Of a stretch of 64,000 nt of DNA, positions 21,270 to 63,253 are shown in pieces (positions within the stretch are counted from its first letter, which is position 1; each line of letters opens with the position of its first letter). Position numbers and translations under genes: made by a program. A model generated the notes under the pieces. The model worked only from the letters and a program-made list of their open reading frames with translations. It was not told where the DNA came from and did not search any database. Origin of the DNA: Podarcis liolepis (taxonomy: Eukaryota); NCBI GenBank assembly GCA_965112155.1, contig OZ218098.1; one strand, given 5' to 3'.

Positions 21270-22300
21270 TGTACCTCTAGAACAGCTCCTCTTGGCCTCG
21301 GCCGATCACCCCATTGCTTCTTCCTCCCAGGAGGGGCTGCCCCCCCCCATAGCCTCCACCATCTCTTCTCCTCGCCCCACCTCCCACCCCGCGAGACCGT
21401 GTCCCACCGCGCACAGGCTTCTGTGCCCCGACTTCCTCCCTTCGCACATTCCGTGATTTATTTACAGCCGGAGCCGAGTCGCGCTCTCTCCCCCCACCCC
21501 CCGCCCTCCAGGGCAAACAGGAGGCTTCGCCCGCAGCTTCCCGAGCGAGAGGCCGCGGAGCCCGCTTTCCTCGCCGCATCCCTCGCCCCAGCACCCCTCG
21601 GCGCCTGGGAGAGCCCCGCTCTCGGCATGCCCTGCTCCTCCTCCACGGTCTCGGGAGGCGGCCGCGCGCTGCCCTGAGTCCCCCGGGAGGCGGCGGGAAG
21701 GCCCTTCTTCGCACAGCGCGGCAGGCGGTGGCCCCTCCTGGCGCCGCGCGCACCCGGGTGTTGCTGCCAGGCCCGCCGCCTTCCTGACACGGACTGGCTC
21801 CCCGGCCAGGCGCCCGAAAATAGCAGCTGCCTCGGCATGGAGCGGGCGGCGGCGGCACTGGCCTCGGAGCAGGTAAGCCCGGCGGAGAGACCTCCCCGAG
21901 AAAGGGCTTCGCGGCGGGTGTCTTTCTGCTGGCCAGGCCGGCCCGGGGAGCACGGACGGAGGGCACTTCCTGGCGCAACAACGCCGCGACCACTTCCTGC
22001 TTTCGGTTGCCGGGGGAGTGGGGCTAGCGGGGCTTACCTGAGCCCCGGAACCTGCTCCCCCAGCTCATTGGACACCCTTGAGTGTCAAGAACGGAGCTTT
22101 CGAGCACGTGCAGAGCGCTGCCTGCCCATCTGCGTTTTCTCTCCCACACCTTCGGGTGCGATTCCTAGGCGTGCTTGGCCCGTAACAATTTCGCGTTTAG
22201 AAACTGAACTCGGTGCTCCGACTCGTCTGCTGCCGATTTAAATAAATCTTATGCATTAATGCGATCCGCGCAAGTGTTCGGGTGAACAAAAACAAAAGCT
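21270..22300. promoter_or_regulatory. CpG island / putative PRKAG3 promoter
   Basis: Very GC- and CpG-rich stretch in a CpG-depleted background, containing the first coding exon (ATG 21837, donor CAG|GTAAGC). GC boxes present; E-box CAGCTG at 21824-21829. Confidence 0.75.
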
Positions 22301-37624: not shown

Positions 37625-39804
37625 TATTGAGTTCCCCTAACAGCAACAGAAGGATTTGCTAGGAGGTAGGTAGCATTTTCCCAGCAGACTTAGTGGGGAG
37701 GGTCTCACTACAGGAAAGCATGCAGTTTCTCTTCTTGTTGTTGTGTTCATCTTCTTTGAAATAAACTTTCATATCAAGACACAGACTATATGCAAACAAG
37801 CATGACTACCTTTGTTTGTATGTATGCATAAGGTACTTGGATATTCCAGGGAAGTGTAAAGTTCCTGGGGATAGTTACACCTTTTCTTTCAACACCCATC
37901 TCGTATCCCACTCTGAGACAGGTAAAGCTATTTTATCCACTGGAGGCCACATGTTCAGTGGCCACTTGGTGATGCTATTACGTTTCACAGGAGGAGCAAT
38001 GCATCTCCAGGATAGTGGGCAGCCAATAGGGGGCTCTGCAGATGTTTTGGATTAAAACTGTCATCAGCTCCACCCAGCATGGCCGGTGATTGTAATTGTG
38101 GTCCAAAACATCTGAAGGGCACCAGATTTGCTGCTTGCTGCTCCAGGAAGAAAAAAAGAAACTAGCAAGGACACATTTAAAGGTAGGAGAAAGGAAGAGG
38201 GTGGACTTCTTTGAATGATAAATAGCAAGACTGTCACATGCTGATATTATAGTTTTTATTATGATAGATTGATAACAGAGTGTCTTTATTATTAGGCTAT
38301 TAGGATCTTCTTGTTCAAGTCTTTTCAAATATATTTATGAAAGAAAAATCAACAATGGAATTTTAATGGGGACCCGGAAATTCAAAACACCCTTTGAGAA
38401 CATCCTCATCCACACCAAATTCCCTGCTGTTGGCCATGCCTTTAAGGCACTCAGCACTGGAGGGACCTCACTGAGCATTTAGAACCACAGTTCCCAGCCA
38501 TTGAAGGTTGACTCACACATTGGAAAAGAAGTTCATGCTACAGCTCCTTCCACTCAGCATACTGGGATTCAGTTAGGAGTTCACAAAGGGGAAATAATTT
38601 GTTAAGAGCCATGGAATCTTTCAGGTGGCAAGAACCCAAAATTCCCTCAGCAAAATACATAAGTTTAGAGCACTGCTGAAACGAGCAGAGAAAGAGAAGG
38701 GATTGGGCAGGAGTGAGTCTCAAGAGAGAGAAGGGAAGCGATAGACTGTGTGAGAGACAAAACTGAAACAAAACCAAGTCATTGCTCTGGACAGTCTTTC
38801 ATCTCCCATCCTTCTTTGATACTATTTACTCCAGAAGGATATGTGGACATTTTAGCATCAGGAGACTCTTACAACGTTTTCATAACTGATTGATACAGGG
38901 TAATGCAAAAGTACAGAGCTAAGAAGTCTTGCTTCCTTAAGTTCAGCATCAAGTAAGTTCCATCGGTGATTAAGGCACACCCGTTAACAGTAAATGGCCT
39001 CACTCAGGGCTGACATGTGGCCAAGCTGGGTCAGAGGTACTACTTCTAGGATGATTCTGGGCAGAAGGGATTGATTGGGTGGTGCGCCAGCACAGCTGAC
39101 ACCCCCACAAACCCCAAATGAAGTAGGCACAGGAGTTGCAGAAACTGTGAAGGGGGGGGGGGAATAGTAATACCAACCTCATGTGCTAGTAAATACCACC
39201 ACTTCCTGTTTAGCCATTCCAGTTTTTGAGGAAGCTGCCCTCTGTAAACATGTAAGTGCTCTAACGAGGACGAGGGACAGCATCAAGAGCAAAAATCAGT
39301 GATTGAGGTGATGAGGATTCTAGTGCTCGAGAAACCTCCCACTGTGCCATGTTTGGTTTTTGATCAGAATGATACCACTAATGAACTGCTCCAGGAAATG
39401 ACTTTCCCCATCCACCACATGACAACAACTCTGCCATTCAAGTATAACCAGTAATGGACATGGGGGGAAAGGCACACAAGGTATGCACACAAGGTAAGCT
39501 GAACCCAGTTTTCACTGCCCCGGAGTCCATCATAACAGAGGAAACAGATGGCTCAAGAACATGCCTGGAGTTTTCAGCAAACCAGAAGTCCACAAAGCAA
39601 GACCCAACAGTATGAAAGGGGAGGGGCAAGATCTCCTCTGTTCCTGATCATGGAGGTTGGAGAAACGATTGTCAGCCACCATTAAGAGATAAGGCACATA
39701 GCATCTCCCTATGAAATGTGAGGACACAGGCCTGGAATCTGGAGGTGGCAAGGAAGAGGGTTGCTGGGAGGAAGCCAACGCAACGCTGGTGCATCAGAGT
39801 TGCT

Positions 39805-42800
39805 TCATGATACTGGAAGTGGGAAGAATTTGCCCGTCTTCTTGGTGCGGGAGTCATTCCTGGCAGAAGACAAAACAGGAGAGGGAGACCCCAGAGTGGA
39901 CATCTATGGCAGCCCCTCTGGCCAGGTGAAAGGAAGGTCAGAGAACCTGCACAACATGTAGGAGCCTCCACACCTCAGGGGCATGGACACATGGACAGCT
40001 GTGGCAACAAGAGTTTGATAACCCTTCCCAAACAAACCCAGTCCTTATCCAAGGATGGTAGCAGCACTCAATAGCAGCAGGGTTGGGGAATCTTCTTCAG
40101 CCAGAAGAAAGCCTTCCCTCACAGGCAACCTTCCTGGTGTGGCAAACTAGTGGTGAGCAGGGCCGGAAGCAAAAGTGGTCAGAGCAGCCGGTGTGACTTA
40201 TCATTGACTATCTTTGGACTATGTTCCAGCCATACGAAAACCAGAGGTTCTCTCTCACACACCCAAACAGACACTCGCTACTTCTCCATCCAGGCAAGCA
40301 AGAGCACCATCATAGTTTAACAGCACATTCCAGTTAGGCAAAAGCAGGGAGTGGAGCAGGATCTGTGAGGGGAAAGTCCTGGGAGACCCGACAAGGAGGC
40401 CTTGATGGCTGCATTCAGCTCACAGGTCCCCCTCCCCTGCAACCCCACAAAATGCACCCCAGGCAGCTGTGCCAGCTCACTTACGAGGGTGGGAAGGTGG
40501 TCCCAATGCAGTCCCATAGCTTATTAGGGAGACAGCCACCTCCTGGGCTCATCTGGATGGTGCTGATTTCAGGGGGAGTCGGAGGAAAGAAGACCTGGTC
40601 TGTGGGTGGAAGGTTAGAGGGAAGTATTAGGTCCAGCACCCCACCACCACCACCAACCTGTCCTTCGGAGGATCACCAAAACTGAGTAAGGATGGGGCTC
40701 TTATATTTCTTCCTCCCCAAGCCACCCACACTTCAGTTCACCTTGCTCATTCATGACGCTGGGCTTTTGCACCAAAGGCACCAGGTTTTCCTGCTCTTCT
40801 CCCACAAAATGTCTCCAGAACGAAAGAGGCAGTGCTAAGAGATTGGCAACCACCTGCGGGGGAATGGAATCATGTTAGCTTTATCCGGCGCCTAATCGTG
40901 GAAATTCTTCCCCATCTGCCCCACCCGGCCTTCATTAGCTGGTTCTTGCTTATGTTCCACAGAGGTGTCTATCTGCCCATTGTTTTCACATGGATTCAGT
41001 TGTCATCATAAATTTATTGACAATGTGGTAGAGATGAGAGCTTGCAAAAACACAAGCTTGGAGGAACAGTGAAAGCTGACACTCTCACAAGCCAATATTT
41101 GAAACAAAGCATTCAGAATAATTCTCTGAACTCTACGACTTGAGATGCAAAAGCATTGATTAAGCAGCAGTCAGTTATGCTCCATTTGTTACCTTGACTA
41201 TTGAATTTCTCACTGCAGCTTTTATGCTCTTATGAAATTTTATGGAATAAGAAAGCCATGGCACATAGCAAGGGCTCACTTGCCGAATTTTGCAGTGGGC
41301 TAAAATTAGCATTTCTGGGAATCTCAGCTCCCCCCCTCCCACCTTTTAATATAAAAAAGCAAGTTTCTAGCCCATAAGACAAAAATATAATATTAAAAAT
41401 CTGTTTAAAATGCTTGGCAAAGTCTCAGAAGCAAGCAGGATTTCCCACAGTCAGGACTTTGTTCCTGCCTTTGTCACAATTAGCAGAAGCATTCCTCCTC
41501 CAAGCTCAGGGTACCTCCCCACATTCCACTGAGTTCACAAGAGCTACCCTGGTGCAACAAAAATAATCAATCCTCAGTTCTACACTGCATCAGGATTTTG
41601 CTTGATGTACAGTCTGAGCATTGTGCAGTCTTTCCTGCAGTCCCACAGGGGGTCAGAAAAAAATTAAATACTGCACGCAAGTAACAAATACAGGTTGCAT
41701 CTGTTACCAGGCATTGACGTGGTGTGTCTTCCATGATGATGCGTGGGGAAGGGCTAGGATTACTGTGCCCAACTAGAGTCGGTCCAAAGATACGTGCTAG
41801 GTTGTGCCGGTCCATTCGACACTCAGCGCTCTGCATGACCCTAAGGACAGAGAGATGGATCCATGGAGTCAAAGGCCAAAGCAGAATCCTTCTAACCCAA
41901 AGGTACAAAGCCCAGCTATATCCATAACATGGATGGTGGGCATCACAACAGGGTCAGAAACCATGGTTCATGCAGGCCACACAATGGGTGAAGCAACCAA
42001 GCCCACAAGACAAGACAAATTGCAGGGGACAGGATTAGACAAAACCCCTCCTTAGCAGAAAATGTATTCCTGACACCCCTTGATGCAACAGATATCCATT
42101 ATTATGTTTGTTTCTTTTAAGTGAGAAGTGCATTATCTGATGTAGCAAATAAGTGTCCCAAAACAGGTTTCTGAACAGTTACTGTGGATCCAATCAATGA
42201 ACAGAAAAGAGTGCTGTTCAAACCTATTGTGCAAGACAGGAAAATACCCATAGTAGCAAGTGGTGCAGCCAGCACTTTCAACAAGGATTGATGATGGAAC
42301 AATTGTCAGATACTTATCTGCTTGCCCTTGTACAGAGTAAGAAAATCAAGAAAAGGAAGACCTTTATGGAATGAAATGCAAAGGCCTCTGCCTTTACAAA
42401 TGGGGAAGCAAATTCACAACACTCCTAACATGCAGAAACAGTATTATGTTGTTTCAAAGGAAAATACATGGCTTGAACATGCAGTGTCACCTTTTGCCAA
42501 GGCAGAAATCTCCACCAAGTTGAGGGAAAGTTTTGCACATTTTAGAATTCCAGGTATCCCCCTTCAAGCCTAAAATCTGCCCTCACCAGCTTACCTATGG
42601 AGATGCAGCACCAGAAAAGCCAGAGTGTCCCTATTGGCCAGAGGCAACTTCATCACAACATGGCAGAGTGCAGTCTGGCGAGCAGCTTCATCTGGAATTT
42701 CTGGGTGGGAAGAAAATAGTGCTATGAGGTTGGGGGTGGTGGTTTCATTACTACCACTCCAGAAAAGGCACTTTCCACCTACTGCCTTGTCCAAACTCAC

Positions 42801-45800
42801 CTGAAGCACGCAGGAAGGCAGGGTGCAGGGCAAAGGTCACTAGAGGTTCCTTCAGGCTCCTCAGAAAGTCCTTGAGAACCCCACAGATCACATTGACATC
42901 AGCCACCTGGTCCAGTGAGGGAAGCGCTCCTCGGGCACAAAGCAGCTTGCGCTTCCATTCTCGAATGAGGTGCTCTGAACCTGGCACTCTGTATAGCCCA
43001 GCCTGCAGATCACGAGGAGCAAAAGACAAGAGGAACAGATGCACACACAAAAGCTTGTAACGGCCACTAAGGTACAGTCCCAGCCGGCACTTCAGGCCTG
43101 GAATCATTACTACTAGTCAGAAGCATCCGCCGGCACCATTTTGTGGCCTTGCCTCTTTCTGCTTTTTAAAGATGTCACGGCCATTTTGTGTAATGCTGCA
43201 CCCTCATGGATACTTTAGGACGTGAAATGTGAAAGACAGGGCCTTGGATTGGGCCTGTAAGTATATAATTAACTCCTGTGGCTGGATAAAAACAGGCACT
43301 GGGTATGCAAACCCATCTCCCACCACCAGTAAGGAGGGTAGGCGAAGCAAAGAGTTCCAGGCCTAGGGAGAGGGTCAGAACAGGCAACACCAGCACAGGA
43401 TATCCAATGAGAAAGCTCAGAGCATGCAGAATGCAAAGAACGAGGGGACAGATAAGGAGAACAGCAGCAGAGATCAGAAGTAAGATTATGAAGAGCCTAA
43501 AGAGGCTGAGAGGAATTTGGGGGAGAAAAAGTAGCCAGTGAACAGAAATAGACAAATATTAAAAATGCATTAGAAAACCAAACAACCAGCCAAGATGAAA
43601 AAGGAAAAGAAGATCAGAAGTCAGGAGAAGCAAGTGAACTAAATGCAACACCTCTATCCCAACAGCTAGCATAGGGGAAGTAGGGCAAAAAGAAAAATAT
43701 CACAGAAGTTGTGCAGTGACAGAATTAGATGTGACAGAATTAGATGTGGAAATCCAGGTTGATGGCAGTTAAGAGTAAACCATCAGCAGCTCAACCAGCC
43801 TTTCAGAGCCCCACTGCTGCCCCCCCCCATAAATGCACTTACCTCCTTCAGGCCACGCCTTTCCACTTGATTCACACACTGGATGACTAGTGGGGGCACC
43901 AGAGGTGGGGTGGAGGGTGCAAAATCTGCCAGAATGCCCTGAGAAGACATGGGGAACCTTAGAAGAGGCAACTGGTAGTCGGGGGGGGGGGTATACTGTC
44001 TGACAGTGGAGGAAGAACACAGGCATTGTGGCTAGTAGCCATTGATCACGGCTAGTAGCCATCAATGTGGATTGGGGGGAAACAGCTCAGCCATACCTGC
44101 CGCACATGTCGCCCCAGCCACCCAAATTGCTCTTGCCCCCAGCAAAGCCGGCAGCACTGAAATAAAAGCCCCACGAGCTCCCATCCCAGGGAAGCGTCCT
44201 CACCTCTCTCGCTCTGGGGGAGGCAGTCGGCCTGCACACGGACGGGCTGCATTCTTTGCACTCAGGATGCACTACAAGCTGGCAGGGCCGACATTTCAGG
44301 GCCATCTTCCCAAAGCGCAGGCGGGATTTGCAAACCGCACACGACTCCAGGCTGATCATCTTGTAGCCAGGGAAGAGAGAAGAGCATTAGATGAGCACAG
44401 CAGAGATCAAGAGGGAAAAGACCACAGGCTTCCCATAGCTTGCCCCTTTGTACAATATCCCTCTAGCTTGAATTTGTCCAATGGAGCTCTTGGATTTATT
44501 TATTGCATTTATACACTGCCTTTCTGCCAAAGCGGCTGACAGTTTTAAAACATCAAATAAATGATACAAAAGGTATAGTTGGCCCAGGGGTAGGTGGGGA
44601 GGGGAGAGTCCAATTGGCACAGGCTCTGGTGCTGCCCCTGCCTGCCCCCACCCCAATCTCTTCTTCATGGAGCCTTTTTTGTAGGTATATTCCACACCAT
44701 GTTACTGGCATGATCCTTAGTTCCTTAGTGGTGGGTTTGTACTGGAGCACCCACAGATTGTTCCACTTTATCAGCTATCCTGAGATGCTTTCAAAATGTT
44801 ACTGCATGATTGCCACCAGGGCGAGCACTCTTGGGCAAGACAGAAGCAGAACTCTTGTAGTATGCAGTGTTACAAGATTTTAACAGGAAGTTATGAGACT
44901 TGCACAAAATTGGAAACAAATGCAGACAGTTGGCTTAGGAGAACCCAGTCAACCTATCATTAAGAGCACTTGAAAGCATCCCAGCAGATAAGCACTCCAG
45001 CTGAGGGCGTTGCTGAGAGGCAGCCCTGTTCTTCTTTTCTCACCGTCTTGGAAGTAAAGTGGTGCTCTTGGAGGGGTGGTGTGCGAGAAGGAGAAAAGGG
45101 GTCCTGAACACCCCTCAAGTCAGTCCTAATCTTCGTGCCAATGGTGTCACTCTCAGCCTGGCTATTACTTCTGCCTGACCCCTCACTGCTGCCCCAGAAG
45201 GAAGTGGCGTCTGTGGAGAGAAGACCACACATCAGAGACACATTTAAAGGCATGGACACTTTCGTCCAGCGTTCAAGCTGGCACCTCCCAGAAGTCATTG
45301 TTGGATCTTAGCACTGGTCTACCTACTTCCATCTGCAGGCTCCCATTTGGAGTATGACGCCCTGGGGGTGCAGAAGCCCACAATCAAGAACTCAGTGTGA
45401 CTGCTCTGTGTGGACGGAGTTGGCCAGGAACCTGGGCTAAGGTGGGGCAGACAACTTGCTCAATCCCCTCCAGTGGTCCTGGGCTTGGGAGCATGGTGGC
45501 GGTCAACTGTCCAGAGGGCAGACAGGTGGGAGAATGGACTCAAAAGTTTGCAAACCAGACCCCATCTTTAAAGGAGGGGGAGACAAGCCAAATATCTCCC
45601 TGCTCCTCATAAAGCCATTCTTGCTATTCTAGCTCCTATGAATCCAAACCTACACATCTGAGATCACGATTAAACCATTTGGACACACTCAGGGTCTGCC
45701 TGCCAGTCTCTTGCACATAACATGGCTCGTGGTTTTGTAGTTCTACCCCTCCTCCTCCTCCTCCTCCTCTAAACCAGCACCGCCTCCAAATCTGTTTGGA

Positions 45801-47194
45801 CTGCACACCCTTTCTTCAAAGGAAAGGCATAAGTACCCTGAGCATGTATTGAGTAGATTCCCCATCCCCACTTACAACTAAGGAAAACGGGATGGCGATG
45901 AGGAGCCCAGGCAGAACAGGATCTTTTGTCCCTTCACTGTCCCCAACTCCCTTTACAGCATTCTGGGAACAGCCTATTTTCCATTTTGGAAACAGAAAAG
46001 CTTATTGCAGCATATTCTCTAGTTCTACTGCTAAACCTTTTGTCAACACTCATTACCTAACCATGTCTGCCCACCTTCAGAACAAGCCAGGCCACACCCA
46101 AAAAAGGAGGGAAGAGGCACCTGAGCGTGTGGACAGGCAACGGCTCTGCTGGGATCGGCGACGGGGCACCACAGCAATAGGAGGCAAAACGTGGGCAGTG
46201 GCTCCGGATCTCAGAGTCGCCACAGACATCTTATTGGCCTGGCAAGATTGGAAGGGAGGGGCAGAGAATGATGAATGGCAGTCTTGATCAAACCCCTTTA
46301 AATGAAGGATACAGGATTATTCTCTCTCACACACACATCCACACGTTCAAGGGAATCTTAACCCTAAGAGCTTGCAGAACATAAGGGAAACTCCGTTTTA
46401 CTTGAAGCTTCATTGCCCTGTTTGATCATGCCACGTATAACACATACCCTGCTGTGCAATCTACCACATTGCAATATCTTTTTATCAGAGCCATTTATTA
46501 TCAGAGCTGATTTTGCAATGGTGTCAAAGGTTGCAGGCTGGGTCTTCCCTCGCACAGAGATACGCACAAGGGCATCGCCAGGTACTTACACTCGGAGGCG
46601 GAGGTGCCACAGATGTTTGTGCAGATTTGGTTGTTGCCACTGGCTGAATCAGGGGCACGAGGGAGGAGCACTGGAGGAGAGAAACAGGTGTGAGAGCAAC
46701 AGGAAGACAGATCCACATAATTCCGGGTGAGGGAAGCTCAGCACAAATTGCTTGCCATTTTCCACCCTACAGACTATCAACAAGACAGAGCAAAGTAAAT
46801 GGCGGGATACAGACAAAGACGTTTTCAAATATTTGAATGTGTAATTAGAATCACATAAGGGTAAGGAAGATTTATCTCCTCCTGTCCAGTTGTGGTCTCT
46901 GATGAAACAGATGTTTGAGGCAGGCACACAGAACTAATATAGAACGGGTGCTTCAGTTCTGGAATATGTGGCAGCTGAAGGACAGGATGCTTCCCAGCCC
47001 CACCTTCACTTACCCCTTTGTCTCTGCCTTTGAGGGATTTTATCACTTCCAAATCCTAGAAGAAAACAGAAAAGGAAAGCCTGAGAAAGGATGTAGACAC
47101 ATTTGTAGCTCATGGGCTACTTAAAATGAAGGCCCACCCTGAGCTTGAGCACATCTTGCTACTTCTTCCCATCTCAAGTTTTGAACTGTGTGTA

Positions 47195-47225
<31 letters not shown>

Positions 47226-50020
47226 GCATCATTTTAAAAGCTTCTGCAGATAGCCACCTGTATAAGATTGTATCTACATCCCAGAAGCCTCTTCAGCATT
47301 CACAGTATGCACACGTGTTTCAATGGCTATAAGAATCTGTCTACTTGCATTCATCAACAACACACATGTATCTTACTAAGGTTCCATATTCTTGTTTTCT
47401 GCAAGAAGCTACCCTAAACCCTGGTATTCTGGCTATAGTCAAGTAGAATGCTGGTGTGCTTTTAGTTTGTTGCTGGTTTTATTTTTTATTTTTTTAAAGT
47501 TGTTTTTACTTTATTCTTTATGTAAAGTATTTTGAGTGTTGCTTTTTTACCATCCAGTAGTATACAAATTTTATTAAATAAATAAAATAAGTACAGAGTT
47601 GCCTGCAATCTGCATTAGGAGGTGTGCCTGCCTCCATCATAATTAACTTTCCAGAGGAATTTGTAAACATCCCTGTTTATCCAGGCATTTGGGGGATGAG
47701 GAATAGTTCCTGGCAACCCCACAACCATTGGATGGAAGAATGTTTTGAACTGTAATTGCTTTTAGAATGTTTTGAACTGAAGTTGTGTTCATATGTTTTT
47801 AACCGTTTTAGAATGTTTTTGCTTAATTTTAAAGTTGTGTATCTGTTTGTTGACCTGGGGAGGAAGAGCGAGGTATTAATGCAATAATAAATACGCAAAT
47901 AAATTACAACTAAATTACATCTGTCATGGTATGTGGTCTCCAAATAATCTGTGCTCTCATTAGAACAAGGTGCCCATTTCTCACCCCAAAACAACAAATA
48001 AATGTTTGAACCTATGAAGGGTGTTGACAACTTGCTTTACACAAGTACGCACCAGTTAGGTCAAAGGCTGGTTTAGTCCTGCTCCTCTTCACATAGTTTA
48101 GTCTTTTTAAAAATGGCAAAGCTATTTTGCTTTCCCTTGTTGTTGCTAGAATAGTTGCAAGACTACTCTGGAAATCTGGGGAGAAGGGGGAGGGTATGAT
48201 GGTGCTGCAATCCACGCACTTCGCAATAGGTGCTCCCCACAGCTGGCTTTCCCTAGTTCAAACCAAATTCTACTAAAATGTTGCATAACTGGTTCTCTCC
48301 CCGTAGAACAGAATTTTTTACTGTTTTGGGCATACAAGTGCCACAAGGGTGCTTTCAAACTGTTGCTCTTAATATGTCACATGCATCTTCTCCCTTTGGT
48401 GACCAAGCATAATTCCCCCTGAAAGAGTACCGGGTATAACATGCCCCCTATTCTGGGGGACTCAAAATTAAGAAAATGGGGGGAGATTGCCAAGAGTTGT
48501 TAAGCTCTTTTTTTCAGGGAACTGCCCAGAATTGCACATACACTCACAATCTCATGCATTGCCGGGGCTACCCAATTGCCGCTGCGGCAGCCAATTGCCA
48601 AAAAAACTCGCCACAACCACCAATCAGCCGCCCTATTGTCACTGAGAAACTCCGACTCGTGGCAGCAGTCAATCGCACGTACCCCCTCAGCACTACCCAT
48701 GTATAAGATGAGCCAAGATTTTTAACATGATTTTTTAAGTAAAAAAACCCCTTGTCTAATACACGAAAAAATATGGTACTTTGTTTCAAACCAACCCCTT
48801 TCCACGTATATTGCCTCTGTTCATATTGATGTGTATCTCTGAAAACATACACCAACATGCAGGGCCTGTTGCAGTAGTACGTGTGGCACTATCAATTTCA
48901 AGTGTGAAGTCTTGGCTTCTGCTCCTGTAGAGCGCAGAGATCTCAGACAACGTAACCATAAGAGTCTGACTGTGCCCTGGAGCTTTCAGTTCTGACCTGG
49001 CAAGCCTGGGAGGAAGGGATGCTTACTTACCACTTCGTCATCCGAGTGATCAAAGCTGATGTCAGATATGATTGAGGTGCCAAGTCCTTCCACTGCAGAC
49101 GGCCTACTGAGAAGAGTAACACAGGGGCTGTATCACAAATGACAGCCTCATATCATGCCTGTCTCTCCCACTCTTGCTATATAGCTCAGTTCTTCTAATC
49201 CAGTATCTTCTCCAAACACCCATCATTTTTTAAAAAAATCTTTAATGTGGGGATACCATTGTGGGAAAGCTACATTTTCTTTTCATTCAGTCCCTTTCTT
49301 TGCAAGGACCCCATGATGAAGGTGAGACAGGGGTGGCCAAAGAAACATTACTGCTATTTAATCAAGTTTATTGTTCACTGCTATTTAATCAAGTTTATTG
49401 TAGGTTTATCATTATAGCCCAAAGCCATGACAAGTTGTTATCACACTTGCTGTGTTGTTCTGGCATTGTGGGTTTGCATATGAACTAGTCGCCTATCATG
49501 ATTGTTATTTTCGGTATGCATGTCAAGGGGCCCCTTCAGACCTGTAGAATTGGCACTTGGTTTTTTTTATAATACAGTGGTACCTCGGGTTACATACGCT
49601 TCAGGTTACACACTCCGCTAACCCAGACATAGTACCTCAGGTTAATAACTTTGCTTCAGGATGAGAACAGAAATCGTGCTCCGGCGGCGTGGCAGCAGTG
49701 GGAGGCCCCATTAGCTAAAGTGGTGCTTCAGGTTAAGAACAGTTTCAGGTTAAGTACGGACCTCTGGAATGAATTAAGTATGTAACCACTGTACTTCTCA
49801 ATCATAGGAGCCAACTCCTTGGGGCCAAAGGGTCTTTGCACCCCCAATAAAATAGCTCATGGGCATTGCCATGCAAATGGTGTGTATGCACTGTGTCATA
49901 TGATGAATCATGCAGGGTGGGGCCTACTTGGGCCCCCCAATATTTTATTCAAGTTGGCACCCCTGTTCTCAATGTGGATATTCACACCAGTATTTAATTT
50001 GAAAGCCTTTTGCCCCAAAT

Positions 50021-50109
<89 letters not shown>

Positions 50110-51669
50110 GTGAGAAGATGGAATGATTGTGCTTATGGTAACAACTAACTGCACATCTGAATCACCAGAAACTTTCTGCAAATAGTAATAATTTGACTCT
50201 ACCCATTATTGGAACCAGTAAAGCTAAACAGCAGGAATTAGTCAACTAAGCTGAGAGATAAAACTGACCTGCTGTGTATTTGGGCTGTATGATGTATATA
50301 CAACTGTTTGATTGCATTTCATTTATTGTATGCTTTGTGGAATGTGTGAAAGCAGAGATTTACATATGTCCATTTTTAAAAACAAAAATATCCAGACAGG
50401 GATTGATTTGCTTGCCTGAGAGAAGCTGCAATATCATCTGTCTTAAGTACTCCCTTGCCACTCACCACTTGCCAGGCAGCAGGGTGCTGTGGCTGAAACG
50501 TGGCCTTTCTAAAGCCGCCAGGGCTGAGCGCTGGTCCTCATTGAAAGGACTGATTTGTGAATCAGCCATCAGGTAGTCATAGATAAGCTGCAGCTTGCGC
50601 TCCTGAGAGGGATGAAAAGGGGTGAGGGGTGAGTAGAACAATGGAGACCCTGTTGGAATGAAGAATGTAGCAGTCTTCAAGTGCAGCCGCTTTGCAGCTG
50701 TAACCATGTTCAGACTGGTACATCCCTCCTTAGGGTGGGGAGCACCTAGTTCTCCCAAGCCAACCTAATGCAAGTGAACTGTTTTTGCCTGGGATGCATG
50801 TCCAGGACTGCAACTGACTATGCACTAAATACATCCAAGTTCTGTGCTCCCAAAGTCCAAAATTCTGCAGTCTTAATTTCAAGAGAACAGGGAATTTCCA
50901 CTTGCTTGCTGCATAGCTAAGTGTCTAAGCTACTGAGTCACATCAGCTCCTGGCAGCTTTTATGAGACCTGAAACAGCACAGCTGTAGTTGTTATGGTGC
51001 AGCAGTCTCTTGTCCATCTATTGTGCCACACACTAGCTTCTATTCGGGTTGTGCTTAAAACTTCCTTCTTGCTCCAGCCATATCTCTTTAGTTCCCAAGT
51101 TCTGTGGCAGCAGCTCCCCACTCCAGGTTTAGATATTATTCTTCCCAGCATGCATCACTCTGACACAACACAAACCATTCACCTACTAGGCTTTATCACC
51201 CTAAGAACATAATAAGACAAGCATCATCATTTGGTTGGAATCTTATTTGCTCTTGTTTTCTGCTGTTGCTTTTCTGCATATGAATTTTACTTTTCACTGT
51301 TACCCACCCTGGAAGTGCTTTTTGGCAATGAAGAGTGGGGTACAGGTGCTTAAAGTTAAATAGTCTTGTTGATCAGACCAAAGGTCCTGTATCCTGTTTC
51401 TCAGAGGGTGCCTCTGGAAAGCCTAGGCCTCTGGATGTGTTAACCCCCTCTTGCTATTGTTCCCCCACCAACTGGTATTCAGAAGCCTGCTACCTCAGAT
51501 CCTGGAAGCAGTACAGAGCAACCATGACAGGCAGCAACTGATAGCCTTATACATCATGAATTTATCTTTAAAAGCCATATAAACTGGTAAGCTGTAATCA
51601 TTCAACTTGTTTTTATTATTGCTTGTAAGCCGCTCTGAACCCGGCCTTGGCTGGGGAGGGCGGGGTATA

Positions 51670-51705
<36 letters not shown>

Positions 51706-54228
51706 TACACCTTAATTAGGAGCTTGTGAAAAACTACGTAGGGAAGTGCTATAGCTCAGCGGTAAAGCATCTGCTTTGTATGCACAAATCCTTGGCATCT
51801 CCAGGTAGGGCTGTCATTGCCTCCTGGCCCCTGGAAAGTTGATGCTTCCAGTCAAATACTAAGCTAGATGGACCAAAACCCTGAACTCAGTACAAGACTG
51901 CATCCTTATGGTCTGCCCTGAATCAGATTCATTTAATGGCCTCAGATTCTAACATGAGAAGGGGAGAAAAACTCCCCCCCCATCTACTTTTCTCCACCAT
52001 GCCCCTCCAAGAACCTGCTTTTCCAGCTCAGCTTCTGCCCGATGCCTTTTCTTCATCTCCACCTCCACTTGGTTGCGGGCGTGTTTCAACTTCACTTCCA
52101 GGACCGAACATTCATACTCCGACTGGCGCAGCTTCTCCCTTGCTCCCTGCAAGTCGCAATCCAGGCGGCAGCATCGCTGGCGCATCCCCTCGAGACATTT
52201 GGCAATCTGGAGGCAGTCTAGAGAGGGCAGAAACAAGCATTGTGACGTCCACAAAGGTTCTCCATGAGGCAACAGCAATGAAAAGAGAACTAACTGTGTG
52301 GAGTGGACTCTTTCTAAGTAAATGAGTCTATTATTATTTTTTTCAAATTTTTTTTTTACTTTCCCAAATTTATAAAAAGAAATAACATTGCAAAACACAG
52401 AACAAAAGAAAACACATTACAATACAAAAGAAAAACATAAAAACAATTATTTCTTCCAAGATCCAATTTACCTTACATTGTTAGCTGACTTCCTTGAATC
52501 CCCCCAACTGAATTTCATTGTATCACCTTGTAACAGTTCTCCAAAGTCATATTTCTATTAAAATTAACGCCTTCCATTTACTATCCTCTTCTCTTTTATT
52601 AGTATTCTAATCCTTAATGTTTTACAACACATTCTTATAATAAATAACAACAACAACAATAATAATAATAATTTATTTATACCCCGCCCATCTGGCTGGG
52701 CTTCCCCAGCCACTCTGGGTGGCTTCCAAAAAAATATTAAAATACTATAATACATCAAACATCAAAAGCTTCCCTGAACAGGGCTGCCTTCAGATGTCTT
52801 CTAAAAGTCTGGTAGTTGTTGTTCTCTTTGACATCTGGTGGGAGGGCGTTCCACAGGGAGGGCGGCACTACCGAGAAGGCCCTCTGCCTGGTTCCCTGTA
52901 ACTTGGCTTCTCGCAGTGAAGGAACCGCCAGAAGGCCCTCGGTGCTGGACCTCAGTGTCCAGGTAGAACAATGGGGGTGGAGACGCTCCTTCAGATATAC
53001 TGGACCGAGGCCGTTTAGGGCTTTAAAGGTCAGCACCAACACTTTGAATTGTGCTCGGAAACGTACTGGGAGCCGTACGTACTTATTCTAGTCCTAAGCC
53101 TATTTGTTACTTCCAAGTGACTTCTAATTATCTTATATTACAATATTTAGCTAGATATTCTTTAAATTTCTTCCAATCTTCTTGTGTCTCCTCTTCTTTC
53201 TGGTCCCGGATTCTTCCAGTCAGGTTGGCCAGCTCCAAAAAGTCCAACATCTTCATATGCCATGTTAGTGGTGGGCAAGGTCAGAGGCATAAGAAGATAG
53301 AGGAACAGGTGTGGTCACCAGCCTTTGTACGGGAGAAGTCAGAGGCAAATAAGGGACATGGTCAGAGTTCAAGGGCATATGCCAGGCAGGCAAAAGCACT
53401 TGAGTGTGGTGATAGTTAGTTCAGCCCAGGAATAATCCTGAGGGCAAGACAGAGGGACCTGGAGGGCTGCATTTTGCCTCTGGGCCTGAGATTGTCCACC
53501 CCCTCTAGCAGGATATAAAGAAAGACAACCCTGGAACCTGTTTCCATGCATGGCTAAGTGCCAGGATGGACACACAAACTATTTTTGTAACACAAAACCG
53601 ACAACACCAAGAAATGCTCACAAAAAAAAAAAAAAAGAAATGCTCACAAACACAAAACAAAGCCAGGCGACAAATCAAAGGAAGTGGGAGCTGTTGTCAT
53701 GGCAATGTGAGCCCAAGAATGAGCAGCAGGGGGGTGCTTTTATTCAGTTCAGTAACAACATAATTACAAGCAATCTAAATATATCAGCAAGCTTAGTACT
53801 GTAATGCCATTAACATCCAAATAATGAACAGCTACATACTTGTCAGCCAAGCCCAGTCTCTCTGCATTGACTGGGCAGAACAACAAAAGGGTGTTCTGTT
53901 AACACTTACTTCTTAACTGGGCAATGGGTGAGAATGCAGTTTGAAAGTTTTCTGCACTTCAGATAAAATTTGTATTTTACAATGGAACATAATCTCCAAA
54001 ATCACTGAAGATTCATGGAAGCGGGGGGGGGGGGTCAGGCTGCAGCCCCCAAGGCACTGTGTGCATTGCTTAATGCACATCAAGCACCATTAGCAATATG
54101 TTCAGATTTGTCAAAGGCAAAGGAAGGAGAACCTTGGCCAACCCACCTAGTTCGATGCTGCTGTTGAACTCTATGAGGCTCAAGAGCTGGTCCATGTGGC
54201 GCATCAGCTGCGGGTACAGGCGATTCAT
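39805..54228 (-). CDS. Rac GTPase-activating protein 1-like (RACGAP1/MgcRacGAP/CYK4 paralogue): coiled coil + C1 + RhoGAP, about 612 aa
   Basis: 15 minus-strand coding exons: 54228-54147, 52217-52015, 50602-50466, 49106-49031, 46670-46590, 46238-46121, 45210-45044, 44359-44204, 43938-43843, 43002-42801, 42700-42595, 41840-41708, 40853-40742, 40599-40485, 39859-39805 (TGA); total 1839 nt, no internal stop. Motifs LEVKLKHARNQVEVEMKKR, SDISFD, C1 domain HHFTSKT..CAVC..CRPC..HPEC..C, GLYRVPG, LKDFLRSLKEPL, NRDTLAFL, NLARIFGPTLVGH, EQENL, C-terminal KTGKFFPLPVS. The low-complexity exon 46670-46590 is the least certain. Confidence 0.9.
48430..48776. mobile_element. Tc1/mariner (Tc2-like) MITE
   Basis: Right end atacacgaaaaaatatgg|ta resembles the CCGTATTTTTCG-type TIR; left end ta|ccgggtataa is partly deleted. 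Confidence 0.6.
49349..49400. repeat. 27-bp tandem duplication
   Basis: actgctatttaatcaagtttattg occurs twice, separated by ttc. Confidence 0.9.
49575..49791. mobile_element. Tigger-like MITE, same family as 37399-37624, opposite orientation
   Basis: TA-flanked; left TIR cagtggtacctc; interior is the reverse complement of the 37.4 kb copy (gcttcaggatgagaacagaaatcg, ccccattagctaaagtggtgcttcaggttaagaacagtttcagg); right TIR has a short deletion. Confidence 0.88.
49803..49965. mobile_element. hAT-type MITE
   Basis: Perfect 8-bp TSD ttctcaat (49795-49802 and 49966-49973); imperfect TIRs cataggagccaact / agttggcacccctg. Confidence 0.85.
50024..50109. repeat. Compound (GT)n(GA)n(GAAA)n microsatellite
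   Basis: Directly visible. Confidence 0.95.
51669..51705. repeat. (AAT)n tail of a short retroposon remnant
   Basis: Follows tgtaagccgctctga...gggcggggtataaat. Confidence 0.85.
51741..51910 (+). mobile_element. tRNA-derived SINE (same family as 15477-15648)
   Basis: gctatagctcagcggtaaagcatctgctttg...ggcatctccaggtagggctg...gctagatggacc. Confidence 0.65.
52325..53257 (-). mobile_element. L1-clade LINE 3' fragment, interrupted by an L2-type insertion
   Basis: Minus strand 53257-53129 translates MKMLDFLELANLTGRIRDQKEEETQEDWKKFKEYLAKYCNIR*, resembling the ORF2 end of the 7.8-9.6 kb L1; T-rich 3' UTR and A-rich tail continue at 52640-52325. Confidence 0.7.
52640..53077 (-). mobile_element. L2/CR1-superfamily LINE 3' end (young copy)
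   Basis: ORF 52755-53042 [20 protein letters not shown]...AFSVVPPSLWNALP...FRRHLKAALFREAF* is a typical L2-type ORF2 C-terminus; short 3' UTR and a (TTA/TTG)n tail. Confidence 0.85.
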
Positions 54229-54539
54229 CCTGCTAAAGATACAAGGGTCGAGAGGGAAGCAAAGGCACTCTGGGATTCAAAGACCAGTTAAGGGAGTGAA
54301 GAACAGGCAACGCCCAAGTATGTGTACGCCCCAGCCCCGTAGGGGCCCAACACCTTTAGTGTATGCGAAACACTAACAAAGAAATAGCTTCTCCTGAGCA
54401 TGTACAGAGAGAGTCTTTGCTATGTCACTTCCACCCAACCCCTGCACTTTTAGAGCAGCTTCCAGAAATGAGGCCTGATATGCCTTGAAGAGGAGGCCTA
54501 GGAACCACTTTACATTTTCTTTTTCTAAGAAAACATCCT

Positions 54540-55480
54540 CAGCAAAGGCGCGGGGGCGGGGCGGGGAAGGAGAACGTCTTATATCCCACTTACATGTTAC
54601 TAGGGTATAGAGACTCCAGTCAGGCGAATATGGAAACGCATTGACTGCTCACCGAACAAATTACGAGCATCAATGAATCAGCACCTGAGGTAACAAGCCA
54701 TATTACTGCAGCCACCCACACAAAGCATCCTCCGCCATCTAAGAACCGCTGGGTGAGCCGCGGCGTGTTTTAAGCAACCCGCCTACTTAGAAAGCGCCAC
54801 CTATCGCCGGGATTAAAGCCGGGAGCCAATTCGGCCTCTTTTTAAGGAGGGACGGGGATCTCGGCAACAGACCCCCCTCCGCTCTCAGCCTTTATTTTCT
54901 GCTCAGCTACCAGCGGCCCCTCCAAAGTTGTTGCGCCTTCTCAGCCCCCTCTGGCTGCGGGTGGCTAGGCCTCGTCCTTAGCAAAGATGTGGGTACACTG
55001 GCTCTTTAACAGGTGAGGGGGTTCCCCCCCCCGCCCAGACCTGATTGGCAAAGCATCCCAAGCCCATCGCTCCAAAGGCAGTCGCGTAGGAGAGTTTCTC
55101 TAGGTGGAGATTTCTGTGCCATTTTAAGAAGAGGGAGCGCGTCTCCAGGGGGCTGAAAGAGCACGTGCGGAACCCCATCTCCTCCGGTACCTCCCCCCCC
55201 CCCCGGCTTGGAACAGTTGGGCCACGAAGCTTCCGCGACCTTCCTGAAGTCGGGGGAGGCTCCATTCCGGAGCAGGTGGGCGCCACCTTTTCGCCTATAC
55301 CTTTAAGCCCAAGATGCTCGCATTACCAACGGCGTTCCTCCTCGCGAGGGGCCGCTGTCCATCCATCTGCACTTTCGGCATCTGCTCCCTGCAGGCAATA
55401 CCCGTCCGCCCCCAACCACGTGCACATTCCCCGGCCACTCAAGACATCACGCCGTGCTTCTGAGGAAGGGGCCTGCAGCC
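54540..55480. promoter_or_regulatory. CpG island / putative promoter of the RACGAP1-like gene
   Basis: CpG-rich stretch about 0.3-1.2 kb upstream (minus-strand sense) of the ATG-bearing exon, which starts with a splice acceptor, so a non-coding first exon is required. GC box near 54552; CCAAT boxes near 54825 (gccaat) and 55043 (gattggc); candidate minus-strand donors at 54588-54593 and 54647-54652. Confidence 0.7.
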
Positions 55481-56356
55481 CCTGAAACTTTGGCTTTACT
55501 TCTTTTAAGGTGGTGCTAGTCTCCTTGATATCATTTTCCCATCTCCAGCGTACCTGGGCATTTTGTTCAGGGGTGTGATTGGGTCAGGGGTCCTGGAATC
55601 ACTACCCACTCCGATTCTGCAGGGGGGGGCCTGCCACTTTCTGGGATTTCTGGTTTGTTGGACTTCCTTCGACGTTCAGAGGCGCAGCACCTTCAGCACA
55701 TCCTTCCCTGTCCTTCCTTTAGCATTCCTATCCAGCGATAACTGGGTCCCTCTGGTACTCTCTCCATTCCACTAGGCTTCCATCATGCCCACTATAGCTA
55801 TGCTTGCCTTGAAACCCCAGCACTCCAGTTTGCCCATCTTGGCTCTTGAGTATTCTAGCAAGGTAAGTCGCTGCCTCTTAACCTAACCTCACATGGTTGT
55901 GAGGATTAAATAAGGATGGGGAGAAGTAGGTACATCATATATTGAGCTCCTTGGAGAAAAAGGTAGGAGATAATGATGATGGTGGTGATGACGACGACGA
56001 TATAAACATGGTTTCTCTCTCCCAAAGGTCTCAGCCACCTGCACTTTCATTACCTAGTTCTATTCCACCCCTATTTGGGCAATACCAAACAGTTTCACTC
56101 CCATCCTTTAAGGATGATTTATTCTGGACCGGATGCCGCTCAGCACCTGCCAGCTTTCCTCCAGCCACCTTTTCAGCTGAAGAGCTATCCTAATAAGGGT
56201 AGGCCAAGTCCAAAGGAGGAAAGTGCTGAGAGTGGCAAACACTGGGTTGGGGGAGCAGGGTGCTTCATCCAGACTAGCAGTGCTCAGCTAGCAATGCCAC
56301 ACTCTCGAAAGCAGAAAGTGAGAGGCCTGGCAGCCATCTGGGTCTGAGAACATTGT

Positions 56357-60400: not shown

Positions 60401-63253
60401 TTCCTGATTATTATTTTTTAAAGAAAAACATTTTGAATTGTTCAGTATTTTAGGAAAAAGTTGTTCTCTCCTGATTACCCCCTCTTACTCTTAAATGCAG
60501 AGGGGGAAAGTATTGCTTTAAAAGAGAGAGAGGGAATGTTTCTATGAAAAAATAACATCTGGGGTTATTAAACAGAAAATGGAAAACCTTAAGCTGAATC
60601 CTGTAATCAGTTGCTGGTGCTTAGCCCCACTCAAGTCAACTAGTCAATGAATAACAACAACAACAACAACAATTTTATTATTTATACCCTATCTGGCTGG
60701 TTTCCCCAGCCACTCTGGGCGGCTTACAGCACATAAACAATTGTAAAACATTAGACATTAAAAATTTCTCACTATAGGGTTGCCTTCCAATGTCTTCTAA
60801 AAGTCAGATCATTGTTTATTTCTTTGACATCTGATGGGAGGGCATTCCACAGGGCAGGCGCCACTACCTAGAAGGTGCTCTACCTGGTTCCCTGTAACCT
60901 CACTTCTTGCAGTGAGGGAACTGCTGGAAGGCCCTCGAAGCTGGACCTCAGTGTCCAGGCTGAACGATGGGGTGAAGATGCTCCTTCGGGTATACTGAAT
61001 GGAGGCCTTTGAGGGCTTTAAAGGTCAGCACCAACACTTTGAATTGTGCCCGGAAACGTACTGGGAGCCAATGTAGGTCTTTCAGGACCGGTGTTATATG
61101 GTCTTGGCGGCCACTCCCAGTCACCAGTCTAGCTCCCAGTCACCAGTCTAGCTGCCGCAATGAAATGAAACAATGCATGTAATGTCAGGTTCAGTGGGGC
61201 CCATAATCAAAAGATTTCCTTCACATGCATGGGGTCACACCTAGACCTACCTGACACCTGAACAGCTCCTCTTCCACCTACCCATCAGCTGTACGATGAG
61301 AATAACAGAATAATCACTGAAAGGAAATAGTTTACAGCATCATAACTGTCCACACACCTTCCAAGGCAAAGCGGTACAATACACTGGCCATATCTTGCAC
61401 CACCATCCCTGAGGGACTCCTTTTTCTCTCATTCTCCAGAAACACCATCAGGTCTGACACCACCTCATTGATAGCACCCGCATACAAAACAGCCTCTGTA
61501 GGTTTGAGCATCCTCTTGTTCAGCACCTGCCGCAGGCGGTGCCACCGCTCTCCATCCCTGAGGAGAGAGACAGTTGGATCCATGTAAGAAAGAAGAAGAA
61601 GAAGAAGAGTTTGGATTTGATATCCCGCTTTATCACTACCCTAAGGAGTCTCAAAGCGGCTAACAATCTCCCACAACCCACAACAAATATCCCTTGGAAT
61701 ATTTCTCAGTTTGCCAGTATTGGCTCATGGTTTTGCTCTGGAATCACTCCTCATTGACAGGAAACTTGTGACCCTCCAAATGTTGTGGGGCTCCCATCAG
61801 CTCCAGTCAGTATAGTCAATGGCTAGGGATAATGGGAGTTGCAGTCCAACCCTCTCTGAAGGGCTACAGGTTCCCCATCCTGCCACAGGGCATGTTTAGG
61901 CAGCCCTGACTGCAGGGAATAGGAGGGTTTTGGAAACCCTTTCATCACTTAAGAAATCCTTTAGCCTACAATGGGTAGCCTGTTTGTTTGGCTGACAGAG
62001 AGAGGCAGAGAACAGCAGACAGCTGCAAAGTCTTTTTAAAAACCCAACTTCAAACAATTTTATATACCGTATGGGTTCTGTAAGTTTGCAATGAAAGTCA
62101 ACTGTGGAAGGTCTTGATTGGTTGGTACCCATTAAGCCACTAATACTTTCCTTTTCCAATCTCAGAAGTAGTTTTGCAACATAAGACAAATGTTTGTTTG
62201 GCTTTATTTATTAAAATACGAAAGTGGTAGAAGCAAAGAACCCCATGCAAGTGCAACCTACAAGATGCTGCGGTGTGGAGAGTTCCTGTTCAGGGTTGCA
62301 GCAAGCCAGCCATGCCTTTTTCTAGGATAATCCTTTCCATTCCCCCTCCTACTCCAGTTTTCTTTCCCCAACAGTCAGTTGGCATTCCATGTCCACTCTG
62401 CGTCCTCATTCTCACTGAGCTCTTTTGGGGTGCTCCCCTAAAGAATCTTCATTATACTTTGGCAAACCTTGTGATTTCCCCTAAGTCTGCTGGCACCTCC
62501 TCCTCCTATTTGTGTGGTACCATCTTGGCTGCAACGGGGTTGGCATTTGGAGAATTGACTTTGCTATTAATACGGATGCTTCCAAAGGAAGGCATTTTCT
62601 TGCAACATCATATCTGATTTTCCTTTGTGCACAACTGACGCATGAGTCTTCACACATTCCCTGCTTCTCATTCATGATATTCATTGCTATGCCACACCTT
62701 GCCATCCACACCAGTGCGAGGAGTTCGAGATAAGGTATCTGGAATGTGCTTTTCTGTTCCATTCCAGATGTAAGTGTGCCCTGAAAGCACTGTGCCTTTC
62801 CCATAATTGCCGGAACAAATTATACAAAGTATCCAAGCATGCAAATTCATTGAATCAAATTGCAGAATTTAGCTGCTTTTTTCCACTCTTAAAAAAAATT
62901 AAAAGTCTACATTATACACAGCCTTGGAAATATCAAACCATCATAGAAAAATAAAATGCATGCTATGCAAAGACTATGCCTCCCCTTGCTTTTGTAAATA
63001 CTGCCCTTGATATGCCCACACAGTAGCTACAGGATATGGGATGGAACGCTTCACACACTCACTCAGTGAAGGGGCCATAGGCCAAGTGCCGTACGTCCCG
63101 GTGCTCCTTCCAGAGGGCCATGTCACTTCGGATGGGATACTTCCCCTCCTGACGCAACAGCTGCTCGAGGACTTCAGGACTGCCAATATTAATGTTAACA
63201 TAAGGGCCAAACCGAGATTGCCAAATGGGGCCATATTTCTTCCTGGAAATGAC
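57449..63253 (-). CDS. CYP27A1: Sterol 26/27-hydroxylase, mitochondrial cytochrome P450 27A1 (exons 2-9; exon 1 lies beyond the window)
   Basis: Exons 63253-63063, 61557-61358, 59823-59626, 59319-59159, 58755-58589, 58406-58325, 57978-57775, 57574-57449 (TAA); 1329 nt in frame. I-helix [14 protein letters not shown]-helix KETLR, PERF, heme motif [11 protein letters not shown]; RQEGKYPIR and [10 protein letters not shown] are CYP27-type. Confidence 0.93.
60243..60381. mobile_element. Palindromic ~130-bp hAT-type MITE (well-preserved copy)
   Basis: ggggaacttgtggctctccagatgttg...caacaccttctgaagggccatagatttcccc hairpin. Related copies at about 20086-20150, 26968-27098, 28100-28350, 28498-28628, 32700-32838, 35510-35630, 38020-38135 and 61757-61882. 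Confidence 0.75.
60652..61160 (-). mobile_element. L2/CR1-superfamily LINE 3' end, same family as 52640-53077, in CYP27A1 intron 3
   Basis: Shares long blocks with the 52.6-53.1 kb copy (agggctttaaaggtcagcaccaacactttgaattgtgc, ctggacctcagtgtccagg, ccccagccactctggg); (TTG)n tail. Confidence 0.85.
61587..61675 (-). mobile_element. SINE 3' remnant with (TTC)n tail
   Basis: (GAA)n followed by gagtttggatttgatatcccgctttatcactacc...gagtctcaaagcggct, a retroposon tail I associate with lacertid genomes (from memory). Confidence 0.55.

Follow-up and report, generated by a model that had tools for sequence, protein, structure and literature searches.

The stretch of DNA considered here comprises 64,000 nucleotides of contig OZ218098.1 of Podarcis liolepis (assembly GCA_965112155.1), and is referred to below, at its full length, as the window. 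Its minus strand carries, from 54228 to 39805, a gene of the RACGAP1 type. RACGAP1 (MgcRacGAP; CYK-4 in C. elegans, Tumbleweed in Drosophila) is the GTPase-activating protein (GAP) subunit of centralspindlin, and has been regarded as essential for cytokinesis and present in single copy, since mammals, flies and worms possess only one such gene. The gene in the window is intact and under constraint, it is spliced, and close relatives transcribe it; we will refer to it as RACGAP1-like (the “like” gene), and to RACGAP1 itself as the canonical gene.

Gene Structure and Transcription

The coding sequence of RACGAP1-like begins with an ATG at 54228 and ends with a TGA at 39807-39805. It is distributed over 16 coding exons separated by 15 coding-region introns, with an AG acceptor and a GT donor at every intron (exon ends being set by coordinates), and its spliced form has 1881 nt, that is, 626 codons with zero internal stops. 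Coding exon 1 (54147..54228) is used in the same way in the RACGAP1-like protein of P. muralis (P0515). Exon 2 (52015..52217) holds the coiled-coil core (VKLKHARNQVEVEMKKRHRAE) and exon 4 (49031..49106) the SDISFD motif, both assigned by reading of the sequence together with alignment; exon 3 (50466..50602), where the coiled coil ends, exon 5 (47014..47055) and exon 6 (46590..46670), which belongs to the linker, were placed by reading. The linker continues through exon 7 (46121..46238), into whose end the loose ends of spliced contigs at 45213 continue, and exon 8 (45044..45210), which also supplies the first His of the C1 domain and is tied to the next exon by a contig joint (44359/45044). 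From exon 9 onwards all exons are supported by contig joints: exon 9 (44204..44359) encodes the C1 domain, exon 10 (43843..43938) the start of the RhoGAP domain, exon 11 (42801..43002) the part of it with the arginine finger, exon 12 (42595..42700) its continuation and exon 13 (41708..41840) its end, and they are followed by exon 14 (40742..40853), exon 15 (40485..40599) and exon 16 (39805..39859), with the tail GKFFPLPVS and the stop codon. The 3′ untranslated region reaches at least to 39700 (39700..39804), as the contigs extend beyond the edge of the stretch compared.

At the 5′ end of the gene lies a CpG island (54600..55600; GC 0.55-0.61, observed/expected CpG 0.57-0.74 vs ~0.1 on both sides). 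Inside it, a predicted alternative upstream first coding exon on the minus strand (54685..54728; MLCVGGCSNMACYL plus 2 nt, by in-frame translation) has a GT donor at 54684-83 and joins at 54232; it corresponds to the N-terminus of P. muralis isoform X1 (P0524) and of the longer annotated Podarcis isoforms. The initial annotation of this locus, made from the letters alone, had already recognized the RACGAP1-type gene, its open frame and its own CpG island, all of which are borne out; its intact spliced frame also stands, whereas its counts of 15 exons and about 612 amino acids have to be replaced by those given above.

Transcription was assessed by comparing 5.6 kb (39700-45300) with four sequencing runs, among which the assembled contigs from X1 and X5, belonging to separate studies and to two organisms, were informative; the two raw RNA runs yielded no reads, an outcome that carries no weight in either direction. 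These contigs skip eight intervals that equal introns 8 to 15, joining exons 8-16 at the modelled borders, and so confirm 8/8 of the introns covered; the skipped intervals are all CT..AC on the plus strand, i.e., GT..AG on the minus strand. The contigs resemble the window at 95-99% or more, and carry at 45078 a 9-nt insertion in agreement with the three extra residues of the P. muralis and P. raffonei proteins. We therefore attribute them to near relatives within Podarcis, which may or may not include the species of the window. A processed retrocopy, already denied in the initial annotation, is rejected on account of the 15 coding introns, 8 of them confirmed by spliced contigs.

Some details of the transcripts deserve separate mention. 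Exon 8 of the window is short of 9 nt (3 codons) at 45078, an in-frame indel in a low-complexity linker. One X5 contig is unspliced over 40484-41363 (intron 14 and part of intron 13), reflecting either intron retention or pre-mRNA. The donor of exon 15 (40481-40485) reads TC|GTAAGT, and readthrough yields TCG TAA, an instant stop; retention of intron 15 would give a 609-aa protein lacking the conserved GKFFPLP tail. Intron 3 contains, at 50010-50130, a compound microsatellite that reads (CTTT)n, (CT)n and then (CA)n on the gene strand.

Protein Architecture and Regulatory Positions

The predicted protein displays the modules of a centralspindlin GAP: an N-terminal coiled coil, a C1 domain and, directly after it, the GAP domain. 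When single exons were scanned with Pfam, C1_1 was found in exon 9 (E 5e-07) and RhoGAP in exons 11 (E 3.3e-13), 12 and 13, and both families are found in the two paralogues (P0515 and P0489). The zinc ligands of the C1 domain are H296, C309, C312, C325, C328, H333, C336 and C344, and the arginine finger is R391, in GLYRVPG, which aligns with human R385. An alignment of 58 proteins was built from the window model, 22 other “like” proteins, 27 canonical, 4 cyclostome and 4 invertebrate deuterostome sequences; the eight ligands and the arginine finger are invariant across all of them (9/9 positions). The architecture put forward in the initial annotation (coiled coil, C1 with eight ligands, RhoGAP with arginine finger) is thus upheld by Pfam and by the alignment. 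The coiled coil contains a conserved KLKHARNQV...RAE core when aligned with canonical, lamprey and amphioxus proteins, and this core, like the motif SDIS(F/Y)D(x)T(D/E)D, is shared by amphioxus and the two paralogue clades. A C-terminal CLP motif is common to the “like” clade, from ray to lizard.

The regulatory positions present a different picture. In human RACGAP1 the SDISFD region is the region docking PLK1 and ECT2, with S149, S157, S164 and S170 as the PLK1-phosphorylated, ECT2-docking serines; Ser387 has been reported as an Aurora B site and Ser164 as a PLK1 site. Serine occupies positions 387 and 164 in 27/27 canonical sequences. In RACGAP1-like, the position of Ser387 is occupied by Pro, and that of Ser164 by Glu or Asp (Glu in the window), in both cases the state of lampreys and invertebrates. 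Of the 23 “like” sequences, all retain Ser157 and 12 retain Ser149, which is Leu in squamates; the S170 position falls in an alignment gap. The basic cluster that follows the SDISFD motif is degraded in squamates.

Distribution, Naming and Phylogeny

When exon 11 was searched against 1.8 billion cluster representatives, the matches fell into two groups, of 72-82% and 50-62% identity, the former being annotated as “rac GTPase-activating protein 1-like” in snakes and birds. The top representative match, of 1352 aa, has ten stretches matching the 67-aa RhoGAP exon, and may be tandemly repeated or mis-assembled. The window model is 97.9% identical to isoform X5 of P. muralis RACGAP1-like, with the same exon usage, and 96.5% identical to the P. 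raffonei protein. With the Python orthologue as query, the gene was recovered in squamates, turtles, many bird orders and caecilians, being intact in dozens of squamates, birds and turtles; no mammal appeared among the best 120 matches of this protein. The retention in this reptile that the initial annotation proposed is real and wider than it stated, as most non-mammalian jawed vertebrates keep the copy.

The label “RACGAP1-like” in RefSeq, which had been anticipated, is given to the gene in hundreds of species, when it is not wrongly called “RACGAP1”. The paralogue bears the plain name “rac GTPase-activating protein 1” in Gallus, Lonchura, Calypte, Columba, Cuculus, Zonotrichia, Opisthocomus, Pipra, Eudromia, Pogona and Anolis carolinensis. 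In the literature available to the search, no paper describing the RACGAP1-like paralogue was found; the gene is already in the databases under its automatic name, and seemingly has never been studied.

Names such as these might suggest that the gene is a relocated RACGAP1 orthologue, or else a recent sauropsid or squamate duplicate, and the plain RACGAP1 name carried in RefSeq by chicken, Pogona, Anolis carolinensis and several birds is what speaks for it. The first of these options would hold if Podarcis had no other RACGAP1. However, canonical RACGAP1 is separately annotated, on a different chromosome, in P. muralis, P. raffonei, P. lilfordi, Lacerta agilis and Zootoca vivipara (in P. raffonei, canonical RACGAP1 is on the 127.3 Mb chromosome record and the “like” gene on that of 139.1 Mb). 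With the Python “like” protein and the lamprey and Anolis canonical proteins as queries, annotations of both genes were also recovered for Anolis sagrei, Python, turtles, ratites, passerines, caecilians, a frog, coelacanth and lungfish.

Trees of the 58 proteins were inferred under the site-heterogeneous posterior mean site frequency (PMSF) model, by a quick search with the Shimodaira-Hasegawa approximate likelihood ratio test (SH-aLRT), and under LG+F+G4 with 1000 ultrafast bootstraps. The canonical clade obtained an SH-aLRT of 100 and the “like” clade of 99 in the PMSF tree; in the LG+F+G4 tree, with amphioxus and echinoderms as outgroup, support was 100/100 for the canonical clade, 99/100 for vertebrates and 67/74 for the “like” clade. 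The gene of the window lies inside the vertebrate RACGAP1 radiation, with RACGAP1 proteins as its closest relatives, and outside the 100/100 canonical clade, grouping with fish and amphibian copies. Both the translocated orthologue and the recent lineage-specific duplicate are rejected on these grounds, the former also by the separate canonical gene in Podarcis; we regard this pair of options as already refuted, and as the least probable of all those considered.

Both clades include cartilaginous fish, ray-finned fish, coelacanth, lungfish, amphibians and sauropsids, and the duplication therefore predates jawed vertebrates, which answers the concern about a recent event raised in the initial annotation. 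Mammals are found in the canonical clade only. The “like” clade roughly tracks the species tree and includes the chicken protein XP_015145596.1; its branches are 4-5 times longer than the canonical ones (Podarcis-python 0.55 vs 0.118). The placement of cyclostomes is weak. Lampreys have two RACGAP1-type proteins, the second of which (Lampetra planeri, 624 aa) is very divergent, with an end branch of 1.12, and sits weakly with the other cyclostomes. In a non-exhaustive sampling of invertebrates, amphioxus contributed one cluster, whose members are isoforms of a single gene, and echinoderms contributed single clusters, all of them outside the vertebrate clade.

Selective Constraint

The window and python proteins are 73% identical over the coiled coil, 72% over C1 and 81% over the GAP domain, vs only 51% over the linker. 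Constraint was evaluated by comparing amino-acid differences in these three domains with those in the linkers (Fisher p). Differences amount to 4.0% in the domains and 11.1% in the linkers against Lacerta agilis (p 0.001), 4.3% and 10.7% against Zootoca (p 0.003), and 22.6% and 43.3% against Python (p 7.5e-8). This depletion of substitutions in the domains is the signature of purifying selection.

It could be asked whether the gene, even if transcribed, is decaying toward a pseudogene. Its fast evolution is in line with this, as is an amino-acid/intron divergence ratio of ~0.5 within Podarcis (against muralis-like contigs; a rough value, not dN/dS), and the differences between Podarcis species occur without domain bias (p 0.78). 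Against such a fate, the frame is intact over 16 exons and in the numerous squamate, bird and turtle orthologues mentioned above, the catalytic and zinc-binding residues are invariant, and substitutions are depleted in the domains in all the deeper comparisons. Decay is thus very improbable, and a working, constrained gene remains our reading.

Genomic Neighborhood

Upstream of RACGAP1-like and on the same strand is a cytochrome P450 gene (57.7-63.7 kb, minus strand) with its heme-binding motif, read as CYP27A1. Downstream, tail to tail with it, is a CBS-domain gene with AMPK-gamma-like exons (~24.4-33 kb, plus strand), read as PRKAG3, and beyond it a gene of the tubulin-tyrosine-ligase (TTL) family (0.6-7.4 kb, plus strand), read as TTLL4. 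The names PRKAG3, CYP27A1 and TTLL4 represent our own reading of the sequence plus synteny, as the tools gave families only: the ESM Atlas returned family-level leads for the flanking genes, CBS/AMPK-gamma and P450, with scores <0.9. The position between PRKAG3 and CYP27A1 claimed in the initial annotation can accordingly be accepted at the level of the CBS and P450 families, its exact gene names having the status just described.

The order in the window is TTL-family (+), CBS/PRKAG3-like (+), RACGAP1-like (−) and P450/CYP27A1-like (−). Judged against the human map (TTLL4, CYP27A1, PRKAG3), the CYP27A1-PRKAG3 block looks inverted with respect to TTLL4. Between the TTL-family and CBS genes, a GC-rich stretch at 21200-22300 (GC 0.53 in a 2-kb bin), with long GC-rich open reading frames (ORFs) on both strands, is probably a promoter CpG island or a 5′ exon of the CBS gene. 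Three minus-strand ORFs (52755-53042, 60948-61124 and 11587-11988) share the translated motif …LTFKAL.GL…Y.KE.L.P… and resemble one interspersed repeat, situated in intron 1 of RACGAP1-like, in a P450 intron and upstream.

Chicken provides two records of chromosomal position. In a 2016 study, “RACGAP1” is on chromosome 7 with CYP27A1, ZFAND2B, FAM134A, NHEJ1, STK16, GLB1L, TUBA4A, SPEG and OBSL1 (PMC4835825), and in a 2023 study chicken RACGAP1 is on chromosome 33 (PMC10286233). The two records fit a pair of ohnologues and show the confusion in naming. As the paralogue goes by the plain RACGAP1 name in chicken and several other birds and lizards, and the chicken “RACGAP1” shifted from chromosome 7 to 33 between annotations, expression, quantitative trait locus or knock-out work in these species may concern the wrong gene.

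With respect to the human genome, all these chromosome 7 companions are genes of the 2q35 block. Human RACGAP1 lies at 12q13 with PRKAG1, WNT1/WNT10B, DHH and ASIC1, a block mirrored at 2q35 by PRKAG3, WNT6/WNT10A, IHH and ASIC4.

An ancient copy could also have arisen by a small-scale, segmental duplication before jawed vertebrates: the tree alone cannot separate this from a whole-genome event, and lampreys also carry their second, very divergent copy. Nonetheless, the neighbour PRKAG3 is itself the partner of PRKAG1 from the two-round (2R) whole-genome duplications, both genes being 2R ohnologues (PMC4995730). This pairing, the chicken records on chromosomes 7 and 33 and the mirroring of the two blocks together favour whole-genome over segmental duplication, and make the latter improbable. 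The whole-genome-duplication partner proposed in the initial annotation is in this way supported by the tree, the PRKAG1/PRKAG3 pairing and the chicken records.

Evolutionary Origin and Possible Function

Considering the evolutionary part separately, RACGAP1-like is very likely a sister paralogue of RACGAP1 that arose before jawed vertebrates, most likely in 2R, and was apparently lost in mammals. After a duplication that preceded the divergence of jawed vertebrates, most probably in the 2R events, the PRKAG3/CYP27A1 block (of the human 2q35 type) would have retained RACGAP1-like, and the PRKAG1 block (of the 12q13 type) canonical RACGAP1. The copy is still present in cartilaginous fish, some teleosts, coelacanth, lungfish, amphibians, turtles, birds and squamates, while mammals appear to have lost it. 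A second, faster-evolving paralogue is thus present in most other jawed vertebrates, retained since before their lineages split, beside a gene considered to be single-copy. The reading as a whole, namely that of a working, ancient, 2R-derived RACGAP1 paralogue that probably acts in the manner of a centralspindlin GAP, we consider likely.

Different observations weigh against this reading. The monophyly of the “like” clade has only moderate support under LG+F+G4 (67/74), and with such long “like” branches the attraction of fast-evolving sequences may affect its fish members. Synteny beyond the window comes from the two chicken papers and the general human map. Expression was seen in contigs of related species only, and the ~0.5 amino-acid/intron ratio suggests relaxed constraint. 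The change of Ser149 to Leu and the degraded basic cluster make it, in turn, less likely that functions in ECT2 binding or nuclear import have stayed as they were.

Regarding function, the protein keeps all the centralspindlin GAP modules; it would therefore probably form dimers, attach to membrane lipids by means of C1 and act as an inactivator of a Rho-family GTPase, and in some cell type or division stage a kinesin-6 and ECT2 may be its partners. Its regulation should differ from that of human RACGAP1, as would be expected from Pro at the Ser387 position and Asp/Glu at that of Ser164. A centralspindlin-like function can nevertheless be advanced only tentatively. The principal alternative, less probable but to be taken seriously, is that the same ancient paralogue has departed from centralspindlin and become a cell-type-specific Rac/Cdc42/Rho GAP outside cytokinesis, its coiled coil serving for self-association only. 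An evolution 4-5 times faster than that of canonical RACGAP1, a poorly conserved linker and tail (linker 18-26% to canonical), the squamate loss of Ser149 with degradation of the basic cluster, and the retention everywhere of canonical RACGAP1, which could cover essential cytokinesis, are all in keeping with such a departure; the conservation of the coiled-coil core and of SDIS(F/Y)D(x)T(D/E)D would, in contrast, be hard to explain if the ancestral partners had not been retained.

A broader and more speculative scenario, which we consider rather unlikely as it stands, starts from early vertebrates with two centralspindlin-type GAPs. RACGAP1-like would keep the ancestral state (Pro at 387, acidic residue at 164) and serve a specialized division programme of non-mammals (e.g., germ-line cysts, nucleated red cells or the early embryo), and mammals would have folded this role into RACGAP1. 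In any case, a paralogue with all the catalytic and structural modules and without the two canonical phospho-switch serines offers a natural test of those switches.

Comparison With Known Systems

Among other Rho-family GAPs, the chimaerins (CHN1/CHN2) resemble RACGAP1-like in that C1 is directly followed by RhoGAP, and they provide the next-best solved structures (3cxl, 1xa6; E ~1e-27 to 1e-28). Unlike it, they have an SH2 domain and lack both the N-terminal coiled coil and SDISFD, and their scores are far below those of RACGAP1. As a pair of genes, RACGAP1 and RACGAP1-like are comparable to PRKAG1/PRKAG3 and the other 12q13/2q35 ohnologues, which originated at the base of vertebrates and occupy paired chromosome blocks (PMC4995730). 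In contrast to PRKAG1/PRKAG3, the 2q35-side partner of RACGAP1 appears to be missing in mammals, which would make the pair invisible from the human or mouse genomes.

The closest known system is RACGAP1 itself. The order of modules is the same (N-terminal coiled coil, SDIS(F/Y)D acidic motif, C1, RhoGAP), and the human GAP domain is the best match among solved structures (3w6r/2ovj, E 1e-63). On the other hand, RACGAP1-like occupies a separate locus and clade; its identity to the canonical P. muralis protein is only 44% in the coiled coil, 54% in C1, 48% in the GAP domain and 18-26% in the linker; and it possesses a different C-terminal tail, together with Pro, Glu and Leu at the positions of human Ser387, Ser164 and Ser149, respectively.

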